Below, piece after piece: positions 10,069 to 30,565 of a DNA stretch of 64,000 bases. How positions within the stretch are numbered: the first letter of the stretch is position 1; every line of letters begins with the position of its first letter. The stretch is taken from sequence record OZ196285.1; one strand, 5' to 3'. Made by a program: the position numbers and the translations under genes. The notes beneath the pieces were generated by a model. The model worked only from the letters and a program-made list of their open reading frames with translations. It was not told the DNA's origin and made no database searches.

Positions 10069-13000
10069 CCTCGTTGAACTCAAACGTGTTCGTAGACCCA
10101 TCAGATTTAATTCGCGTTGCATTGTTTTCATACTCACCTAGTGTGTTGTAACAACTGACAATAGGCGTATGTTCAGCGCCTGCACACAACTCGGCAATCG
10201 AGGGTTGAGTCCCATCCATCACATCAACTCGCGGTCTATGATAATTCTGAATCGTGTTCGCATCAGTAGAATAATACAAAAAGCTTCGATGTGTATTGCT
10301 CGTCGAGCCCGCCTTGCTGCGAAAGTTGGATGATATATTGCCAATCTTCTCGCCATTGACGTTGTATATGCCATAATCGGTATATGTGTTTGTGTCAGTC
10401 GTACCCGCTGCATACAAATAAGCAACGACTAAAAACCACTCGTTGCCATTTGGCAAATTACCAGACGATATAAAGTATGGGTTGGTATTTGCAGACCCAC
10501 TGAGATTTTCAGTATGCGACCCACTACACCCCAAATACCAACTACCGTTGCCCGTAACTTCTCGTTGAATCCAATTTGTATATCGATGATGCTTGGTAGA
10601 ATCAATCGCGACTGTCTGACCGTACCATCCACCATCACTACTGCTTGTCCCGCGAGTCATACCTTGCCATACAACATCATGGTCACCCCACGGATTTTTC
10701 TTTATAGTTATCAAATTCTCAATAGGATCAGATGTGCCGAATCCGCCATCATCACCGATAACCCACGTCGAATAGTCCAACAACGAAGGCTCAAAATTCG
10801 TTTCAATCAGCTCGCCTGCATGAACAACTCCGTCACGAGTAACACCCGTGTCGTGGTAGCCGCCGGTCACGAATCGCGAATTTGTGTAGTAAACAATCGA
10901 CCCGCTTTCGTTATATCGCCTTCCCTCTGCGAATTGAGACAGCAATTCACCGTTCTTGATGCCCATGAATCCCCACGTTCCGCGTGATGCAATTGCGTGA
11001 TCCTCAGTAACCCCAAAATACTTCAAGAATGTTTCTCTAAGTTGACCGTTCTGAGTCGTACTAGCATCACATCGAGCAGCAGTCATCAACCATCCATCTT
11101 CCATATTGTCCATTGCATGAATCAGCCAGTCAGCAGCTTCTTGAGCAGAGTCAGCGATATCATTTGCAGACGCAACATAAACAGTGCCGTCGAACTCATA
11201 ATACTGAGTAGTCGTGCCCGAATATGTATCCAACGAACCGTAGCCGCGCAACGTCATGCTTTCGTCGTAAATACAGAAGCTAATGCCGCGACTACTAGAC
11301 TGATAACCTTGCTTAACGCCATTGATAAACGTACCGGTATTTCCTGATGAGCTACTGCGAATTTCGATTTCTAAATCGCCATCGCTATCCCAACCCTCAA
11401 CGAACTCAGACGCACAAAAAACACCCGTTTCAACAACAGACGCTCGGACTCTAGACAAACGATTGATCTTCTCTGCTGATAGCTCTGACGCATATACTCG
11501 AACATCAGATACGTGACCCTCATTCATCTTGCGATATTCGTAGCTACCACTAGCACCCGCATCGTAATTGATCATTAGTCGATACGCAGCGCCCGGGTTG
11601 GTATTTACGTTCTCGCCAGTTCCTTCAAGAACGCCATCGACGTATGTTTTGTAAACGCCATCAGCGTACGACATTGCAAGGTGATGCCAAACGCCATCAG
11701 AGACTTGACTCGTGCCCGTTGCAACTTGCTTGTCTGTACCAGTCGAGCTATCACCATACAAATGACATGCTAGTACGCCCCCTTCGATTTGCATCGAATT
11801 TAGAACATTGTTACCGGTTCTACCACCAAACAATAAGAATACAGCCGAATCGGTAGTTTTTACCCACAACGAGCGAGTAAACGCAGGCAATGTTGCTAGA
11901 TAGTCGTTCTTGAACTTAATTGAGTTGAAATGTCCATCAGCAGACGGTCGAATGTAATAACCACTGGCACCAACTGCTGCATCAGAACTCCATCCAGCGG
12001 TTGTCGAATCAAGATACGCATCGTTGCCATACCCCGAACGGTCGTAGACCGCATCAGATTGTATGTCTTGTGGTTCACGTGCCAACGTATCAGACTGAAC
12101 AGCAACAGAACGAGCAAATTTGTACCAGTATGAATTCCCATCACTCGCACCCCCAATTCGCGATGTCAATTTCAAAATATCAGACGAATCAGTCGTGCGA
12201 TGTGACTGAAACATGTATCCTGTTTTCGTTATGAATTCTTTCGTTCCTGATTTGGTTCCGTCACCAACACCCTCATTTTGATACGAAATGAAGTACAAAT
12301 GATCGCGATATGAGGGATCATTTGTGGCGATCAATTCTACACCAAATGTATATGGTGTATCTGATTTCATATCAGTCACATTGAGCGAGTTCGTGTACCA
12401 GCTACCCACATCACCTGTCGTAGTTACAGTAAACGTACCATCGTCATTATTCACAACAGAATTGCGATAATGATTCCCACTAGCGTGTCCATCGCTCAGA
12501 TTCAATCCGAACAGTGGAGCACCGCTCAGATGAACAATTTTCGCGTCTAAAATTTCATCCAATTCGAGGTCTGTGATGCAATGATCGTAAATTCGAACAT
12601 CATTCATTTTTCCATTAGGGCGATAACTCGAACTCGAACTATTCGTTACAGACCAGTTGAACAACTCAAGATATTCTTCAGTATATGCAAACGACGAATA
12701 CGGCTGAGTTTTTTCGATTACCCCGTCAACGAGAAGTTCAAGTTTTGTGCCGTCATAACGATAAGTTAAGTGACGCCACGCCCCGCGCAAATCACTAGTT
12801 CCGTAATAAGCGTTGTATGTTCGACCTGTACCACTCCCCGTGCTACACCCTATGTAAATCTCGCTACTATTGGTTCGCTTCATTAACCCAAGGCATGGGT
12901 TCGAATTCGCGACGTGATTATGTAGAGTTACCAGCCCATTCGCAGTATTCGTATGAGCACTACCTCCACTATAGAACCACGCTGTCATTGTAAATTCTTT

Positions 13001-15487: not shown

Positions 15488-16936
15488 TTATACTGCGTAC
15501 CGGTCGATACCAACAGTCTTCATCATGATCTTCACTGGCTCAAGCTCGCCATCAAGTAAAGAAGTCAGGATAGATGGACTACAACCCGACACAAGTGCCG
15601 TACCTGCCTCACCCGTTTTCACTGGTACGTTGTCTAGACGACCGCGAATGTTCCAGAACGCTAGTTGCGGCATTTCGTAGCCCGCTGCTGCGTATTGAGC
15701 TTTGATAGCATCAAAGTTTGTTTCTGTGCGGCTTGGCCAACCACCACCGCATTTCGCAGTGTTGAATTCCATGTCAGACATGATCAACATCTTCGTAGGC
15801 ATTTCAGATTGTGGCAAGTTTGCACGCTGCGCACGCTCCAATAGCACTTCGAAACACTTCTGAATATCAGTGCTCATGTTCTCACCAGAACGACGCATGT
15901 TAGCAAGACGCGTTGACAGTGTATCACCAACAAGCTTGTGGAAATGTGGATCGCCTGAGAACGAAATGAACTGATCTTTGAAGATACCTTCGTTACGTTC
16001 AGCTACGTAGACACCAAGAGACATCGCTACGTCCATACAAGTTGTAACAGTGCCCTGTGAATAGCAGCTACCTTGTTCTGAGTTAATCGCACAATTCATT
16101 GAGCCAGACACATCAACAACAGGGATGATGCGCTCGTCAGACCCTTCCATGTAATTCGGAAGTGCTTTCCATTGCTGATCTGCTACACGTGAATCGCCCA
16201 TTCGTACGCTGCGAACAACGTCGTAAGGGAAGACTGCACCTGCATTGATCTTAGCTTCGCCTTTCTCAAGCTTGTTGATGTACTCACCGTAGTTCTCAGC
16301 CGCGTTACGACCGAATGCTTTCTGATAACGCGCAGACGCTACAGATGGCAACTTACCGAAGTCGATCTCGTTCCAGTTCTGTGAACACATTTTCTGTTCA
16401 ACAGTGTCAGACAGCGTAGAAATGACCTTACGCCATTGCTTCGATGTCACGCCAAGCGCCTTGATAGTGCGCTTAAACACGATACCGTTTTTACTCTTCT
16501 CACGAGGGAACCACTTCGCAGCCAGTGCGTTTTTGCCGTTCACGATTGCATTTGCCCATAGAGCAATTGCATCAGACTCAAGAGGAGTACCGAACGCAGT
16601 CACTAAGTCATCGAAACGACCTAATTCTGGCACCTTGTGCATTACAGCACGTGCAACGTCAGGGTTTTTCGCGATAAGTTCAGCGAAAATGCGACGGAAA
16701 GTACCGCGCTCACCTGCACCACCGCGCACGTCGCGAGACCATAGCAAGATACGTGTTGCTAGTTCAGGGTTTTCACCGTATGCGCGATTGAACGCATGTA
16801 CTGAATCTTTGTTACCGCGCATTGCTGCTACAGTAAAGAACAAGTTCAGACACTCGTTACCCGAAGTGCTGTGTGTAATTGCACCGTTTGCTGTACGTGC
16901 GTCGTTTGTGCTCATTGCGTTCATAAATGCTGACAT
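15488..16936 (-). CDS. DUF2828 TROVE-like/vWA protein (Ro60-related RNA-binding protein)
   Basis: T.NGA..H..S, RDVRGGAGER, GRFDDL, AAKW.PR and SVA..RY.KAF motifs; vWA MIDAS VVDVSGSM and MSDMEF. Start moved to 16936 (SD GAGGA). Confidence 0.9.
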   Translation of the reverse strand: MSAFMNAMSTNDARTANGAITHSTSGNECLNLFFTVAAMRGNKDSVHAFNRAYGENPELATRILLWSRDVRGGAGERGTFRRIFAELIAKNPDVARAVMHKVPELGRFDDLVTAFGTPLESDAIALWANAIVNGKNALAAKWFPREKSKNGIVFKRTIKALGVTSKQWRKVISTLSDTVEQKMCSQNWNEIDFGKLPSVASARYQKAFGRNAAENYGEYINKLEKGEAKINAGAVFPYDVVRSVRMGDSRVADQQWKALPNYMEGSDERIIPVVDVSGSMNCAINSEQGSCYSQGTVTTCMDVAMSLGVYVAERNEGIFKDQFISFSGDPHFHKLVGDTLSTRLANMRRSGENMSTDIQKCFEVLLERAQRANLPQSEMPTKMLIMSDMEFNTAKCGGGWPSRTETNFDAIKAQYAAAGYEMPQLAFWNIRGRLDNVPVKTGEAGTALVSGCSPSILTSLLDGELEPVKIMMKTVGIDRYAV

Positions 16937-24305: not shown

Positions 24306-24382
24306 TGGATGCGTGAGAGTGGATTCGAACCACTGACCTCCGGCTTATGAGACCGACGAGCTGACCGCTGCTCTACTCCGCA
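24306..24382 (-). tRNA. tRNA-Met(CAT), initiator-like body
   Basis: D arm and variable loop resemble tRNA-fMet; one bulged base in the acceptor stem; CCA. Confidence 0.8.
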
Positions 24383-25048: not shown

Positions 25049-25123
25049 TGGCGCCTCATGTAAGATTCGAACTTACGACTCCCGAGTTAACAGCTCGGCA
25101 CTCTACCACTGAGTTAATGAGGC
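25049..25123 (-). tRNA. tRNA-Asn(GTT)
   Basis: Cloverleaf, G73, CCA. Confidence 0.95.
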
Positions 25124-25500
25124 ATATTCTTTTGCAAGGCGTGTTCTTCTCGATGACAGTTAGAGCAAAGCATTATACACTTCTCTAATTCAGCTTCAAT
25201 CAATTCCCAACGCATAGTATTGCCGTTCGAGATACCGAAGTCTTTGCCACCGGGTTCTACGTGATGAAACTCAAGAGCATCAATACATCTATCGTAGCCA
25301 CACCGTTCACAACAACCGCCCTTCGATTCAACCGCCCGCAACTTAGTGCGTCGTCGATAAGAAACGACTGCTTTCTTATTCTTTTCTTTACGTTCTTCAT
25401 CGCTGTACAGTCGTCTATGTTTTCCCATATACAGACCGCCACATTTGCGACTACAGAATTTATTAAGTGCATCAGCACCACAATTTAAACATTTGTTCAT
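25114..25500 (-). CDS. HNH endonuclease, free-standing homing endonuclease-like
   Basis: CxxC zinc fingers, CERCG...LEFHH...C..LCSNCHREEH. Confidence 0.9.
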   Translation of the reverse strand: MNKCLNCGADALNKFCSRKCGGLYMGKHRRLYSDEERKEKNKKAVVSYRRRTKLRAVESKGGCCERCGYDRCIDALEFHHVEPGGKDFGISNGNTMRWELIEAELEKCIMLCSNCHREEHALQKNMPH

Positions 25501-27491: not shown

Positions 27492-28010
27492 TTATCTAAG
27501 GCTGAACTGCAAGTTGCGCCAATCCCAAGAACTATTGCCTTTGCGATTGTGCCATGCGTGCCAGTCTATTTTAATGGGACAGTTCTTCGAACCGACACGA
27601 GCGTAGAAACGTTCGTATGTGTCAGTCTCTCTAGCCTGCTCTCTAAGCAACTTTTGACGTTCATTGATATAATCACTGCACGCTTTGTTATAGTCTGCCC
27701 TAGAGAACTTGTGTTGCTTACTGCGTTGCGTGCTGAATTTCATATTCAGATAAGGTCGAATCACATTGACGTGAGTACGTGACCATCGCATACTGAAGCT
27801 TTCTTCAGTCTGTCCTAGAATTTCACCAGTCTTCTTGTTGCGTGACAAAAGCACCCAACAGCGTTCACGAGTATAATCAGCCCGTGACATCACATTTACA
27901 GATTCAGTATGACGCATGTTATACAAGCGTCGTACGTCTGAACGAACCCCGGGACTCATTTTGTCTCTAGTCTCACGGTCAAATGCATGTGCAAATCGCA
28001 ATAGTTTCAT
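27492..28010 (-). CDS. Arg-rich hypothetical protein
   Basis: Start moved to MKLLRF at 28010 (SD GAGGA); the longer ORF runs into an ncRNA. Confidence 0.65.
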   Translation of the reverse strand: MKLLRFAHAFDRETRDKMSPGVRSDVRRLYNMRHTESVNVMSRADYTRERCWVLLSRNKKTGEILGQTEESFSMRWSRTHVNVIRPYLNMKFSTQRSKQHKFSRADYNKACSDYINERQKLLREQARETDTYERFYARVGSKNCPIKIDWHAWHNRKGNSSWDWRNLQFSLR

Positions 28011-28023
28011 GATATTTTCCTCT

Positions 28024-28267
28024 TGTCGCCGCCCTGTGGAATCGAACCACTTCAAACACAACACATCATCAACCCGATAAGAGTTTCGAAAGTCAGAGCC
28101 TACCAGCATGTCAGATCTTGAGCTTTTTTTATTGCATCAGAGAAATTCGACTCCCTCTGATCTTTTTCTTATTACTCGCCCGAGTGATTCGCAACGGAAG
28201 TCAGTAATTAATTGACGACTGAAGTAATGTTCGGGAAACACTGCGTATTGTACACCGAGTAGGCGGC
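28024..28267 (-). ncRNA. ~240-nt RNA closed by a tRNA-like acceptor stem and T arm
   Basis: 5' GCCGCCT pairs with 3' GGGCGGC after GTGG-TTCGATT-CCAC; several internal hairpins; dedicated promoter. Confidence 0.6.
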
Positions 28268-28289: not shown

Positions 28290-28318
28290 AGCTTAACGCT
28301 TTTTTTAATGTCTGTCAA
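28290..28318 (-). promoter_or_regulatory. Sigma70 promoter
   Basis: TTGACA-17-TAAGCT just upstream of the 240-nt RNA. Confidence 0.75.
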
Positions 28319-28341
28319 CGTTTATTTTCACTTTTTTAATA

Positions 28342-28419
28342 TGGTGACCCTCGCGGGACTCGAACCCAGCTATCTTTCGGTTATGAGCCGACTGCTTTTA
28401 CCTGTTAAGCTAAAGGGCC
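28342..28419 (-). tRNA. tRNA-Ile2(CAT), lysidine type (alternatively Met)
   Basis: GGCCCTT acceptor and CTCATAA loop as in ileX-type tRNAs; CCA. Confidence 0.8.
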
Positions 28420-28420
28420 A

Positions 28421-28783
28421 TTATGATAACCACTTACCGACTTTAGCCGCGAAGATTGTCGATTCTTCATTTATCAGTGCAGTGCTCTTGATTTGATGAA
28501 ACGCATCTTGTTGATGCATCTGATCAAGCTTGTGAGCGCACTTGGCTAAGTCTTTAATCGTTTTCATTATTTCTTCTGTATCGAGTTGAGACGTTAAGGG
28601 ATGATGCACTAGATCGTCTAGCACAGCTTCTATCTGCCCGTAACAGCCCATACCGATGAAGTTAACAATAAGTCGATACTTCATTTCAACAGAGAACGAA
28701 CAATGCTTTCTCAGATTGCGTTTTACAACTTCACAACGAGTCAAGCATACATCTAGTTCTGTCTTAATTGCGTCAAACGGCAT
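28421..28783 (-). CDS. Hypothetical protein
   Basis: 120 aa, SD AGGTGA. Confidence 0.65.
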   Translation of the reverse strand: MPFDAIKTELDVCLTRCEVVKRNLRKHCSFSVEMKYRLIVNFIGMGCYGQIEAVLDDLVHHPLTSQLDTEEIMKTIKDLAKCAHKLDQMHQQDAFHQIKSTALINEESTIFAAKVGKWLS

Positions 28784-28800
28784 ATTGTCACCTTTTTAAA

Positions 28801-28923
28801 TGGTGGAGAGTAGTGGATTCGAACCACTGACCTAAAGACCCATTCGTTTTAATGTTTGCAGCATGAATGCTTTACAGAATTCTTTTAACATTCTTTTGCT
28901 CTACCAAACTGAGCTAACTCTCC
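28801..28923 (-). ncRNA. 123-nt tRNA-like RNA with an expanded anticodon domain carrying CTGCAA (element E)
   Basis: Perfect acceptor GGAGAGT/ACTCTCC-A-CCA, canonical D and T arms, AAAGA/TCTTT stem enclosing about 53 nt. Confidence 0.8.
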
Positions 28924-28935
28924 AGAAAAAACACA

Positions 28936-29057
28936 TTGATGCGGGTGCAGGATTCGAACCTGCGTCACGATCTTATGAATGATATGCGATTTGATTGCTG
29001 AATACAAGTTTGTCAACTTGCGTTTGCTACGTGTGCTAACCACTACACCAACCCGCA
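28936..29057 (-). ncRNA. 122-nt tRNA-like RNA with an expanded anticodon domain carrying CAGCAA (element F)
   Basis: TGCGGGT/ACCCGCA acceptor, D-like arm, T arm GCAGG-TTCGAAT-CCTGC; ends CAA rather than CCA. Confidence 0.8.
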
Positions 29058-29100
29058 TCAATGTGTTCTTGTGATGCTACGAATCAACGTAGCATCCGAA

Positions 29101-29233
29101 CCTGTTTTATATTGCCTTAGCTAACTAACATAATCTGAAATCATGCGCTTTAATATAGGGAGGCGTCCCCATTCGCACAGTTAGCATAGAAAAGCTATAC
29201 ACCCATTCTTCTATCATGTCCAAGGCAAACAGG
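29101..29233 (-). ncRNA. ~130-nt nested-helix RNA
   Basis: Nested pairs CCTGTT/AACAGG, TGCCTT/AAGGCA, GCTAACT/AGTTAGC and TGCG/CGCA. Confidence 0.45.
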
Positions 29234-29301
29234 ACTATGAAAACGAGTGCGAGAAAATAGACAATCAAATTGCATTACCTCGCTAATTTATGAAAGCACA
29301 T

Positions 29302-29423
29302 TGGTCGAGTGTACTAGAATCGAACTAGTCCCACGATCTCCTAATGATATGCTAAATTGGTTGCTGAATACAAGCTTGTCAACTTGCGTTATGCTACGTG
29401 TGCTGCCACTACACCAACACTCG
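29302..29423 (-). ncRNA. 122-nt tRNA-like RNA, paralogue of element F (element G)
   Basis: CGAGTGT/ACACTCG-A-CCA, T arm ACTAG-TTCGATT-CTAGT; insert nearly identical to element F. Confidence 0.8.
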
Positions 29424-29440
29424 ACCAATATGCTTTCTAT

Positions 29441-29591
29441 TTCTTTTAAATGTGCGCTACTTGCACGACGACTGAGCGAATCTTAACTCAGCTAGTTTTT
29501 GTTCGATGTGTCCGCGGCTAAGCTTCTCACCTGCTTGTCAGAACTTACCTGACCCCATGTATTCATTGCGTCTAGCGCACATTTAAAAGAA
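29441..29591 (-). ncRNA. ~113-nt structured RNA inside a perfect 19-bp inverted repeat
   Basis: TTCTTTTAAATGTGCGCTA/TAGCGCACATTTAAAAGAA; inner GTCAG/CTGAC and CTGAG/CTCAG hairpins. Confidence 0.6.
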
Positions 29592-29604: not shown

Positions 29605-29826
29605 TAAAGAGCAGAAACGATAAGACTAGTCTGTTTATTCAAGAGTGTTCATCTTCAAGAAGAGGCGAAAACGATGAACTTAGTTCGCTTAATCAACTGT
29701 GTTAATCTTAGCAGCATTTTCGCTGAAGTCAAACACTTTTCAAATTTCTTTCATCGAATCAAGAGTTTGTGTTGCTATCTCTCGACTCGATGAAATACAT
29801 TCTACAGGCTTTTGAACGTAAGTCAA
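29605..29826 (-). promoter_or_regulatory. rrn-like leader with tandem promoters and boxA
   Basis: TTGACT-16-TAGAAT (29799-29826), TTGACT-16-TAAGAT (29705-29732), hairpins, then TGCTCTTTA (29605-29613). Confidence 0.65.
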
Positions 29827-29844: not shown

Positions 29845-30117
29845 TTACGATTGAATGATAATGCCGCTTTCCGTCTCACCGCGCTCTAGTGCTGCATGTT
29901 TAATTTGCAACTGAGAGACTGCGTGCTGAAGCTCAGTGATCGTCTGGTCATATAGCTTCATGTTGCTTTGCATGTGTTTGATTTGATCGCTCTGCAAACC
30001 CATGATGTACGTTAGTAGAATGATGCTCTCATTATCTTCAAGAGATTCGGGAGCTTTATTGTACTTGTCTAGTACGCTTTGCAGTGTGACACCGCCAAGA
30101 TTAGTTTCATCAGCCAT
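29845..30117 (-). CDS. Hypothetical coiled-coil protein
   Basis: 90 aa, overlaps the end of 57B. Confidence 0.7.
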   Translation of the reverse strand: MADETNLGGVTLQSVLDKYNKAPESLEDNESIILLTYIMGLQSDQIKHMQSNMKLYDQTITELQHAVSQLQIKHAALERGETESGIIIQS

Positions 30118-30565
30118 TGTCTTCCGTCCACCTTAGGTCTAGTGGTTCGACGTATTCATCGACTAAGCGAATTTCAGCGTCTACTTGTAAAGGAGTGATT
30201 GCATCATCATACGATAGTGTGACGTGCGGTGAGTAGTCAGGGTAGTCGTGAGTACCGCCGATAGAGATAAGATCGTCGTGACGTTCTGTAAGCTCAGGAC
30301 AAACAAGTTTTGCAACGACTGCAAACTTACCGTCCTGAGTTTTCCAACAATCAATATAAGTCACTTTAGCAACGAACACTGTATCAACAGTAGGTACGTC
30401 AACTTGTTTGCGGCTGTATAGAGTTGTTACGTGAAACTTCTCAGGGTCTAAAGGGTTTTCTAGACGAAGAGTTGTTTGCAAGCGAACTAACTCTTGCTTA
30501 CTCGCTTCGTCTAGTTTGATACCAACGTACGTTCCCTGACTTTCAAGGAACGTAGATAGTTTCAT
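30110..30565 (-). CDS. 57B: gp57B 2H-phosphoesterase (Acb1-like)
   Basis: Two HxT motifs (FHVTTLYS, PHVTLSY); position after 57A. Confidence 0.9.
   Translation of the reverse strand: MKLSTFLESQGTYVGIKLDEASKQELVRLQTTLRLENPLDPEKFHVTTLYSRKQVDVPTVDTVFVAKVTYIDCWKTQDGKFAVVAKLVCPELTERHDDLISIGGTHDYPDYSPHVTLSYDDAITPLQVDAEIRLVDEYVEPLDLRWTEDNG

Follow-up and report, generated by a model that had tools for sequence, protein, structure and literature searches.

The tRNA cluster of Vibrio phage F86 and its annotation

The DNA analysed here (the window) is a stretch of 64,000 nucleotides from the record of Vibrio phage F86 (OZ196285.1), a KVP40-like, T4-type phage originating from seawater and oysters; its positions 28300-29300 match that phage at 100% identity. 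Its minus strand carries a tRNA cluster, comprising 25 genes as predicted by ARAGORN and 26 as predicted by Rfam, that is syntenic with the part of T4 in which genes 1, 57A and 57B and the tRNAs lie. One gene of this cluster, here termed element E, carries an insert in its anticodon loop; its parts, and promoter matches lying upstream of E and of two paralogues (D1 and D2, described below), are as follows.

28801..28923, minus strand: element E, a tRNA-Asn(GUU)-type gene with an insert and an encoded CCA (Rfam, ARAGORN with the intron option, orthologues)
28886..28923, minus strand: 5′ exon of E, i.e. the acceptor 5′ strand, D arm, AAAGA and the loop part AUGUUA (sequence)
28840..28885, minus strand: 46-nt insert (putative intron) at the canonical 37/38 position (ARAGORN intron option and excision scan)
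28865..28882, minus strand: insert hairpin GAAUUCU/AGCAUUC, 7 bp with one U.C mismatch (covariation across families)
28872..28875, minus strand: GUAA tetraloop capping the 7-bp stem of this hairpin
28856..28861, minus strand: single-stranded motif CUGCAA (consensus C-N-G-C-A-A; register fixed in 70 elements)
28840..28855, minus strand: 3′ tail of the insert, A/U-rich and variable, holding a GAAUG specific to F86 (alignment)
28801..28839, minus strand: 3′ exon of E, i.e. G38, UCUUU, variable loop, T arm, acceptor 3′ strand, A73 and CCA (sequence)
29705..29826, minus strand: two sigma-70-like promoter matches, on the strand that carries D2-D1-E and upstream of these genes (consensus matches only, not enriched over shuffles)

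The F86 record already contains 28804..28923 as the tRNA VPHF86_TRNA_0025 (element E) and the neighbouring 28937..29057 as tRNA_0026 (paralogue D1). Some 50 related vibriophage records match the stretch that includes E and hold orthologues of it. The KVP40 orthologue, found at the same place in the tRNA cluster, is labelled tRNA-Pseudo-4, and two paralogues in that phage are labelled tRNA-Pseudo-5 (P5) and tRNA-Pseudo-3 (P3). Other vibriophage records name such genes tRNA-Asn, -Phe, -Cys or -OTHER, and the intron-bearing calls under these names in phi-Grn1, phi-ST2, phi-pp2 and 1.081.O are, like the KVP40 genes, direct orthologues or paralogues of the F86 genes, E being 84-95% identical to its counterparts. 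Two vibriophage genome papers refer only to ‘pseudo-forms’ or low-score tRNAs (PMC3468402, PMC5107563). Neither the records nor the vibriophage genome literature (the KVP40 genome paper aside) was found to describe the shared module, insertion at 28/29 or the wider distribution reported below. E is real and has been annotated before, but as an oddity and without explanation; a chance or artefactual origin was rejected on its tRNA score of 57.6 bits and its roughly 50 orthologues.

A complete tRNA body with an interrupted anticodon loop

Read on the minus strand, E runs GGAGAGU-UA-GCUC-AGUUUGGUA-GAGC-A-AAAGA-(53 nt)-UCUUU-AGGUC-AGUGG-UUCGAAU-CCACU-ACUCUCC-A-CCA. The canonical acceptor stem, D arm, variable loop, T arm, discriminator A and CCA described in an earlier note on this DNA are confirmed in the sequence, and the Rfam tRNA model (RF00005) aligns to E over its full length (positions 1-71) with 57.6 bits against a threshold of 29 bits (E = 7.8e-10), placing a 48-nt insertion in the anticodon loop. 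The AAAGA/UCUUU stem around 53 nt, also described there, is present in the minus-strand sequence; with these 53 nt between the stem strands, E as encoded has no contiguous 7-nt anticodon loop and, as the note had proposed, could not decode in this form. The anticodon loop has nevertheless not been replaced, as the note had it, but interrupted: AUGUUA, i.e. U33, the anticodon GUU (28887..28889) and A37, has been retained, and none of the 15 distinct vibriophage orthologues of E has lost GUU. Across 15 vibriophage variants the 5′ exon has a mean pairwise identity of 98%. E is missed by ARAGORN in default mode; with the intron option, the program reports a tRNA-Asn(gtt) with a perfect cloverleaf and a 46-nt intron after A37, the boundary of which can slide by 1 nt because of the flanking A residues.

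Orthologues of E show compensatory changes in both the T stem and the acceptor stem, which argue against a decaying pseudogene. In many orthologues (L002, L004, L005, L008-L011, L017-L019) the 5′ strand of the T stem contains a one-base U bulge, a feature unusual in a working tRNA, and compensatory changes surround the bulged U (ACG(U)GG/CCCGU and GCG(U)GG/CCCGC). E has A73, whereas the other Asn genes here have G73. A normal tRNA-Asn gene at 25049..25123 makes E redundant, and E is missing from phages nt-1 and TCU-VP03. No terminator-like site lies between the promoter matches at 29705..29826 and E.

Architecture and covariation of the insert

The insert of E contains a module with a constant order of parts: an A-rich linker, a 7-bp hairpin capped by a GNNA tetraloop, exactly 3 nt, the motif CNGCAA and a variable A/U-rich tail. 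Membership of the GNNA/CNGCAA family was defined by a 7-bp hairpin, a G-N-N-A loop, a 3-nt spacer and C-N-G-C-A in the anticodon arm of a tRNA-like element, and E shows this arrangement at 28882..28856 (GAAUUCU-GUAA-AGCAUUC AUG CUGCAA). Inserts of the family are approximately 38-56 nt long; their hairpins are closed by U-A and C-G pairs around loops of GACA, GAUA, GUUA, GUAA or GUCA, and CNGCAA lies 3 nt past the hairpin in each of 70 elements. In the window the full pattern occurs three times, always in tRNA-like elements (E, D1 and D2), with one more match corresponding to the level expected by chance.

Comparison of 31 distinct hairpins from all families identified changes on both sides of the helix at all seven pairs, with a covariation score of 0.83 against 0.23 in shuffles, none of 500 shuffles scoring as high. 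Paired cells amounted to 94.5%, compared with 61% in shuffles and 30-51% when the partner strand was slid, although preselection of hairpin windows for at least five of six inner pairs inflates this percentage (but not the compensatory changes). The single-sequence minimum free energy fold of E, with a z of -1.45, is uninformative. Within the E family, identity is 0.98 in the 5′ exon, 0.89-0.94 in the hairpin, 0.96 in CNGCAA, 0.68 in the linker and 0.76 in the tail (14 of 18 tail columns being variable), i.e. the core of the module is about as conserved as the exons, the linker and tail less so.

These alignments modify the structure drawn in the earlier note. Its CATTC/GAATG helix is possible in F86 only, since no other vibriophage orthologue examined has the 3′ GAATG, all of them reading CUAGGUAAA or a close variant at this position. 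Similarly, the AUG and CUGCAA that it placed on display upon this helix do follow the hairpin supported by comparison, but not as a conserved reading frame, ATG-CTG-CAA being broken by 1-nt indels in the orthologues L004, L009 and L012.

Excision of the insert in silico

The consequences of removing the inserts were explored by a scan of all combinations of k bases from the 5′ side and 17-k bases from the 3′ side of the anticodon region, the conditions imposed being a fully paired 5-bp stem, U33 and a purine as residue 37; when the inserts were shuffled, a canonical arm arose in approximately 1-2% of cases. Removal from E of the 46 nt after A37 gives AAAGA-AUGUUAG/AUGUUAA-UCUUU, i.e. a 5-bp stem and a 7-nt loop with GUU, U33 and a purine at 37, which is the gene structure of an intron-containing tRNA. 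This is the outcome that the earlier note had set against its own reading of E, and it favours an intron-containing tRNA.

Canonical arms also result in other families (colons here mark the ends of the insert). All nine P3 variants give CG:..:UGC-CUGUUAA-GCACG, with the Asn anticodon GUU, and all D2 variants give CGAUC-loop-GAUCG with UAG or AGG. The D1-like element of a cyanophage yields CGUCC-AUCAUAA-GGACG (CAU), and its E-like element, with the insert at 29/30, yields ACGGC-CUGUUAA-GCCGU (Asn GUU, G73), a product that hardly differs from the tRNA-Asn of Alishewanella phage Slicko01, which has no intron. In P3, D2 and the cyanophage families it is the 5′ strand of the anticodon stem that the insert divides, either at 28/29 or at 29/30, and in the non-E families the splice context is ACG:UA...AU:; vibriophage E is the outlier, with an intact anticodon stem, an insert at 37/38 and a different splice context. 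A rumen-type phage array consists of three genes in tandem that share both their insert and their stem (CGGAA/UUCCG); their loops read Gly UCC, CAU and Pro UGG, and their discriminators fit (U73; A73; U1.G72 with A73, respectively). Aberrant loops (8 nt, AGG or A33) are frequent in D1, D2 and P5. Occurrence of the same anticodon in E and in its cyanophage orthologue is very unlikely by chance, and provides the strongest reason for regarding E as an interrupted tRNA-Asn gene.

Paralogues and distribution

BLAST comparison with loci from 20 relatives identified five paralogous insert-bearing families (E, P5, P3, D1 and D2), three of which, E, D1 and D2, are carried by F86. The two paralogues in the window are as follows.

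28932..29066 (approximately 29057..28938), minus strand: paralogue D1, module at 28/29 (annotated as tRNA_0026)
29296..29433 (approximately 29423..29302), minus strand: paralogue D2, module at 28/29 (from reading the sequence)

The module of D1 reads GCAAGUU-GACA-AACUUGU, AUU, CAGCAA; the anticodon-like loop of this element, AUUCAUAA, is 8 nt long and its terminal helix 16 bp. D2 without its insert reads CGAUC-AUUAGGA-GAUCG (UAG) and has a 17-bp terminal helix. These 16-17-bp helices, in which pairing of leader and trailer extends the acceptor stem, covary across phages. The 5′ strand of D2, UUGGUCGAGUGUUG, is similar to the 5′ stem of vertebrate Y RNAs, and gave no match to the Rfam Y_RNA family. 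The D1 and D2 hairpins are nearly identical in F86 (GCAAGUU-GACA-A[A/G]CUUGU) whilst those of their KVP40 orthologues differ, a pattern suggestive of gene conversion.

The cyanophage, entered in its record as Synechococcus phage BUCT-ZZ01, has a distant D1-like element followed by an E-like one, i.e. in the same order, and its inserts share an identical 33-nt core in different tRNA bodies. Such near-identical inserts in different tRNA bodies of one genome (in this cyanophage, and in D1 and D2 of F86) fit mobility or gene conversion. A search with the conserved D-type 5′ sequence returned two uncultivated viral contigs and 37 metagenome stretches, many of these on contigs of 50-300 kb, and the module is also present in uncultivated rumen and freshwater phages, its range thereby including unrelated phage lineages; the D-type pattern occurs in none of 185,579 bacterial and archaeal species genomes. 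The D-type body has a relative without an intron in T4 tRNA-Arg(UCU). Neither 50,697 phage records nor IMG/VR yielded an intron-less allele of E, P3 or the D type, the one pattern match proving to be a coincidence within a coding sequence.

HNH or homing endonuclease genes lie in or beside the tRNA clusters (25114..25500, minus strand; L020:2215-2868; L025:1947-2516), and in TCU-VP03 such a gene stands in place of E, P5 and D1. Their presence brings to mind segB of T4 and the interplay of introns with endonucleases.

Comparison with known RNAs

Group I and II introns have a conserved catalytic core and are roughly 200 nt or more in length. The insert of E is, as the earlier note observed, too short for either: it comprises 46 nt, and no Rfam intron family matches it even at E ≤ 10. 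Like the group I introns of bacterial and phage anticodon loops, it interrupts a tRNA gene of bacterial type in surroundings where homing endonucleases abound; unlike them (approximately 200 nt or more), it is only 46 nt long and lacks a group I core. The protein-spliced tRNA introns of archaea and eukaryotes are closer in size, being likewise short, and in position, since E has its insert at 37/38 and the paralogues at non-canonical sites in the stem. Thermoproteales tRNA introns occupy non-canonical positions and undergo intron transposition, and, as in that order, similar insert sequences here occur in different tRNAs of one genome. The bulge-helix-bulge (BHB) recognised in these introns consists of a 4-bp central helix, joining the exon end to the 3′ end of the intron, with a 3-nt bulge on either side. 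Permissive criteria applied to seven representatives recovered the central helix no better than in shuffled introns, 312-494 of 500 shuffles being at least equal. The phage inserts therefore differ from archaeal and eukaryotic introns in lacking a BHB and in their bacterial host, which is not known to have an EndA-type endonuclease; none was seen here.

Counterparts in other phages are the ‘enigmatic introns’ in tRNAs of Lak megaphages, described with the statement that phage tRNA introns had previously been unreported (Devoto et al. 2019, PMC6784885). Both are non-group-I inserts in the anticodon region, found by tRNA finders in eukaryote or intron mode and without an Rfam match. However, the Lak inserts (sequences in Table S6 of that study) are approximately 80-115 nt long, occupy 37/38, open with (U)ACA and include a T-arm-like GGUUCGAAUCC hairpin, whereas that of E has 46 nt with a GNNA hairpin and CNGCAA, and no internal T arm or GGUUCGAAUCC-like hairpin; the two thus belong to separate classes. 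A search for follow-up literature on the Lak tRNA introns found none. E is best filed as a short variant of the poorly understood phage tRNA introns, with a defined module and a wide range in large phages. Rumen contigs additionally contain tRNA genes with 87-101-nt inserts at 37/38 (L027:~2579-2738 and L033:~10365-10524, both minus strand; L028; L049) that begin UACAGGA and resemble the Lak intron class, and a further type of insert, with a hairpin followed by UUACAAG, is found in L029, L030, L048 and L060.

Among stable noncoding RNAs, T4 species 1 and 2 (rnaC and rnaD, 119-139 nt) also derive from a T4-type tRNA cluster; a T arm is found close to the 3′ end of rnaC, and the CCA at the end of rnaD is encoded. 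Neither has detectable homology to E or shares the module, rnaC scoring only 17.5 bits on a tRNA-clan model. Y RNAs and YrlA are, like E, tRNA-like noncoding RNAs, and F86 encodes a Ro60-like protein (below). However, YrlA is topologically permuted, its 5′ and 3′ ends forming the Ro-binding stem and its ‘acceptor’ being closed by a loop, whereas E has the normal tRNA topology. Rfam Y_RNA gave no match. Assignment of E to YrlA was rejected: the hit has 29.1 bits against a threshold of 69, aligns to positions 27-81 of the model only and runs from the T arm of D1 into the D arm of E. It is an artefact of tandem tRNAs, a kind of false positive against which the family's own authors caution (PMC4201824).

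Three further candidates were set aside. For a tmRNA (a tRNA-Ala-like domain with G3.U70 plus a tag reading frame) or a mini-ORF tag starting at ATG or GCA, ARAGORN finds no tmRNA, E has A3-U70 and the frame is not conserved. The hammerhead-like CUGAYAAG is a hairpin loop with pairing flanks, of which the outer C-G and U-A pairs leave a GNNA tetraloop. As a promoter or MotA box on either strand, compared by eye with the published consensus, the module is inconsistent across paralogues.

A Ro60-like protein and other neighbouring genes

The minus-strand ORF at 15488..16936 encodes a protein of 482 residues with DUF2828 and DUF7788 domains (phrog_850). Its AlphaFold model (pLDDT 81) best matches Ro60 of Thermus phage phiLo (E = 2.5e-8), with animal Ro60 and a Ro60/pre-5S rRNA complex also among the best matches, suggesting from the predicted fold that the product is Ro60-like. 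The phiLo protein binds phage Y-like RNAs encoded beside its own gene (PMC12135203); no YrlA-like RNA was found beside the F86 gene. A specific linkage of Ro60-like genes with the module was rejected, there being no module near the gene in two other large phage contigs. An RNaseH-like gene (PF04308; 14913..15443, minus strand) follows the Ro60-like gene, and the pair recurs in the large phage contig L068.

Two neighbours of E were considered as processing enzymes and rejected. The ‘57B RNA ligase’ (30110..30565, minus strand) is not a splicing ligase but an Acb1 anti-CBASS phosphodiesterase (Pfam, 6.7e-44); the ‘RNA ligase’ label on 57B homologues is misleading in many phage records. The adjacent ORF of 120 residues (28421..28783) gave, as a possible RNase, a sub-threshold HigB-like match and has no homologue near the module in non-vibrio loci. 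At the loci checked, no splicing endonuclease or ligase gene adjoins the module, and HNH endonuclease genes are common.

Interpretation of element E

The explanation that we favour, whilst putting its probability at slightly under one half, is that E is an intron-containing tRNA-Asn gene, the insert of which is excised at the RNA level, probably with the assistance of protein. Early-type promoters lying upstream would drive transcription of E together with the tRNA cluster, and the ends of the RNA would mature like those of any tRNA. The hairpin and CNGCAA would form the unit recognised for removal of the insert, which would proceed by protein-assisted cutting and resealing rather than by self-splicing, with the halves rejoined by RNA end-healing and sealing enzymes of phage or host; the outcome would be a second tRNA-Asn. 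Phages of the KVP40 type carry an Rnl2, and that of KVP40 has been characterised (Yin et al. 2004, as cited in PMC2577357). In the 28/29-type paralogues the break would be a nick in a duplex, the preferred type of Rnl2 substrate. Several observations weaken the intron reading: there is no splicing endonuclease or ligase beside the loci checked, no BHB beyond chance and no match to an Rfam intron or ribozyme family; E has A73, is redundant with tRNA-Asn, has a T-stem U bulge in many orthologues and aberrant loops in its paralogues; and its splice context deviates, intron-less alleles were not found, and nt-1 and TCU-VP03 lack the gene.

The main competing possibility, which we consider doubtful but worth retaining, is that E gives rise to an unspliced, stable, CCA-ended tRNA-like RNA. 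Its body would be a scaffold providing processing, stability and CCA, and the hairpin and CNGCAA would be the working part, i.e. a module that binds protein or acts as a decoy; it might pair up with the Ro60-like protein of the phage in the manner of a Y RNA, or lure host enzymes that target tRNA. The insert core is conserved to the same extent as the exons, neither 50,697 phage records nor IMG/VR gave any intron-less allele, paralogues tolerate aberrant anticodon loops, and the covarying 16-17-bp terminal helices of D1 and D2 are unlike a normal tRNA precursor. The stable RNAs rnaC and rnaD of the T4 tRNA cluster set a precedent, the predicted fold of ORF 15488..16936 resembles phage and animal Ro60, and the cyanophage carries a Ro60-like gene immediately ahead of tRNA-Met, D1 and E. 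However, an unspliced RNA would leave unexplained both the retention of GUU and canonical post-excision arms across lineages with differing insert positions and the fit of discriminator to anticodon in the rumen arrays. Furthermore, there is no match to YrlA or Y_RNA at threshold, Ro60-like genes occur in 711 phage records and in two other large contigs with no module nearby, and that of F86 lies 12 kb away from E. The earlier note had likewise proposed a scaffold or decoy rather than a decoding tRNA. The complete CCA-ended body is as it described, and A73, redundancy, the lack of intron-less alleles and the Ro60-like protein keep such a role alive; nevertheless, because the excision results, the cyanophage orthologue and the intron-less Asn relative agree, the evidence points to an interrupted tRNA-Asn gene and not to a purpose-built decoy.

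Two other explanations appear less probable still. If the insert were a small selfish DNA element residing in redundant tRNA genes, E could be a dead or dispensable gene, i.e. a pseudogene left behind. This is improbable, but would accord with the KVP40 label tRNA-Pseudo-4, the redundancy of E with a normal tRNA-Asn, its loss from nt-1 and TCU-VP03 with a homing endonuclease gene at the site, the labile anticodon loops of D1 and P5 and the frequency of HNH endonuclease genes in these clusters. Against this, orthologues have lasted across some 50 phage records and into a cyanophage, 5′ exons are 98% conserved, and the acceptor stem, T stem and insert hairpin all show compensatory changes; this persistence, taken with the compensatory changes, indicates selection on RNA structure. 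We regard as very improbable indeed a tiny self-splicing or self-cleaving ribozyme, with the GNNA hairpin and CNGCAA as its core and the tRNA body aiding its folding. Helices with a GNNA cap that keep a constant distance from an invariant single-stranded motif are typical of RNA tertiary modules, and no protein candidate emerged among the neighbours, yet at 41-55 nt the inserts fall far below known self-splicing introns, no Rfam ribozyme matches even at E ≤ 10, and inspection of the alignments revealed no conserved pairing of the motif with the splice sites.

Returning to the intron reading, a broader form of it would make the inserts an uncharacterised class of short mobile phage tRNA introns, at 28/29 or 37/38, excised and rejoined by a protein pathway operating in bacteria, such as cleavage by an endonuclease and subsequent sealing of the nick by phage Rnl2/Pnkp or host RtcB. 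We put this forward only tentatively, as a proposal rather unlikely to hold in full. Were it correct, protein-dependent tRNA splicing would for the first time be documented beyond archaea and eukaryotes, and phage Rnl2 would have a natural substrate.

Structured inserts of 40-55 nt recur in phage tRNA genes from marine, freshwater and rumen sources, with canonical anticodon arms preserved. The textbook view is that bacterial-type tRNA genes carry only self-splicing group I introns. If E is an intron-containing gene, infected bacteria would possess a new route of RNA excision and ligation, Rnl2-type RNA repair enzymes would gain a physiological substrate and the ‘pseudo-tRNAs’ annotated since 2003 would be accounted for; if instead it specifies an unspliced RNA, this would represent a new class of tRNA-scaffolded noncoding RNA tied to phage Ro60-like proteins.

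Additional features of the window

tRNA finders in bacterial mode overlook genes of this kind, and spurious ORFs are annotated on top. In F86, ORFs at 28885..29061 (minus strand), 29247..29486 (plus strand) and 29288..29428 (minus strand) overlie D1 and D2, and are most likely spurious; 29247..29486 is an annotated CDS in the F86 record. An ordinary tRNA at 24310..24381 (minus strand), with the anticodon loop CUCAUAA (CAU) and an Rfam score of 53.5 bits, is not called by ARAGORN. The annotated ORF of 205 residues at 27492 probably starts too far upstream, because its phrog match begins at residue 34. Between this ORF and tRNA-Met lies a noncoding stretch of approximately 250 nt (28026..28266, minus strand) that has an acceptor-like closing helix (GCCGCC/GGCGGC) and a T-arm-like GUGGUUCGAUUCCAC, and is approximately 72% conserved at the same place in all vibriophage relatives.
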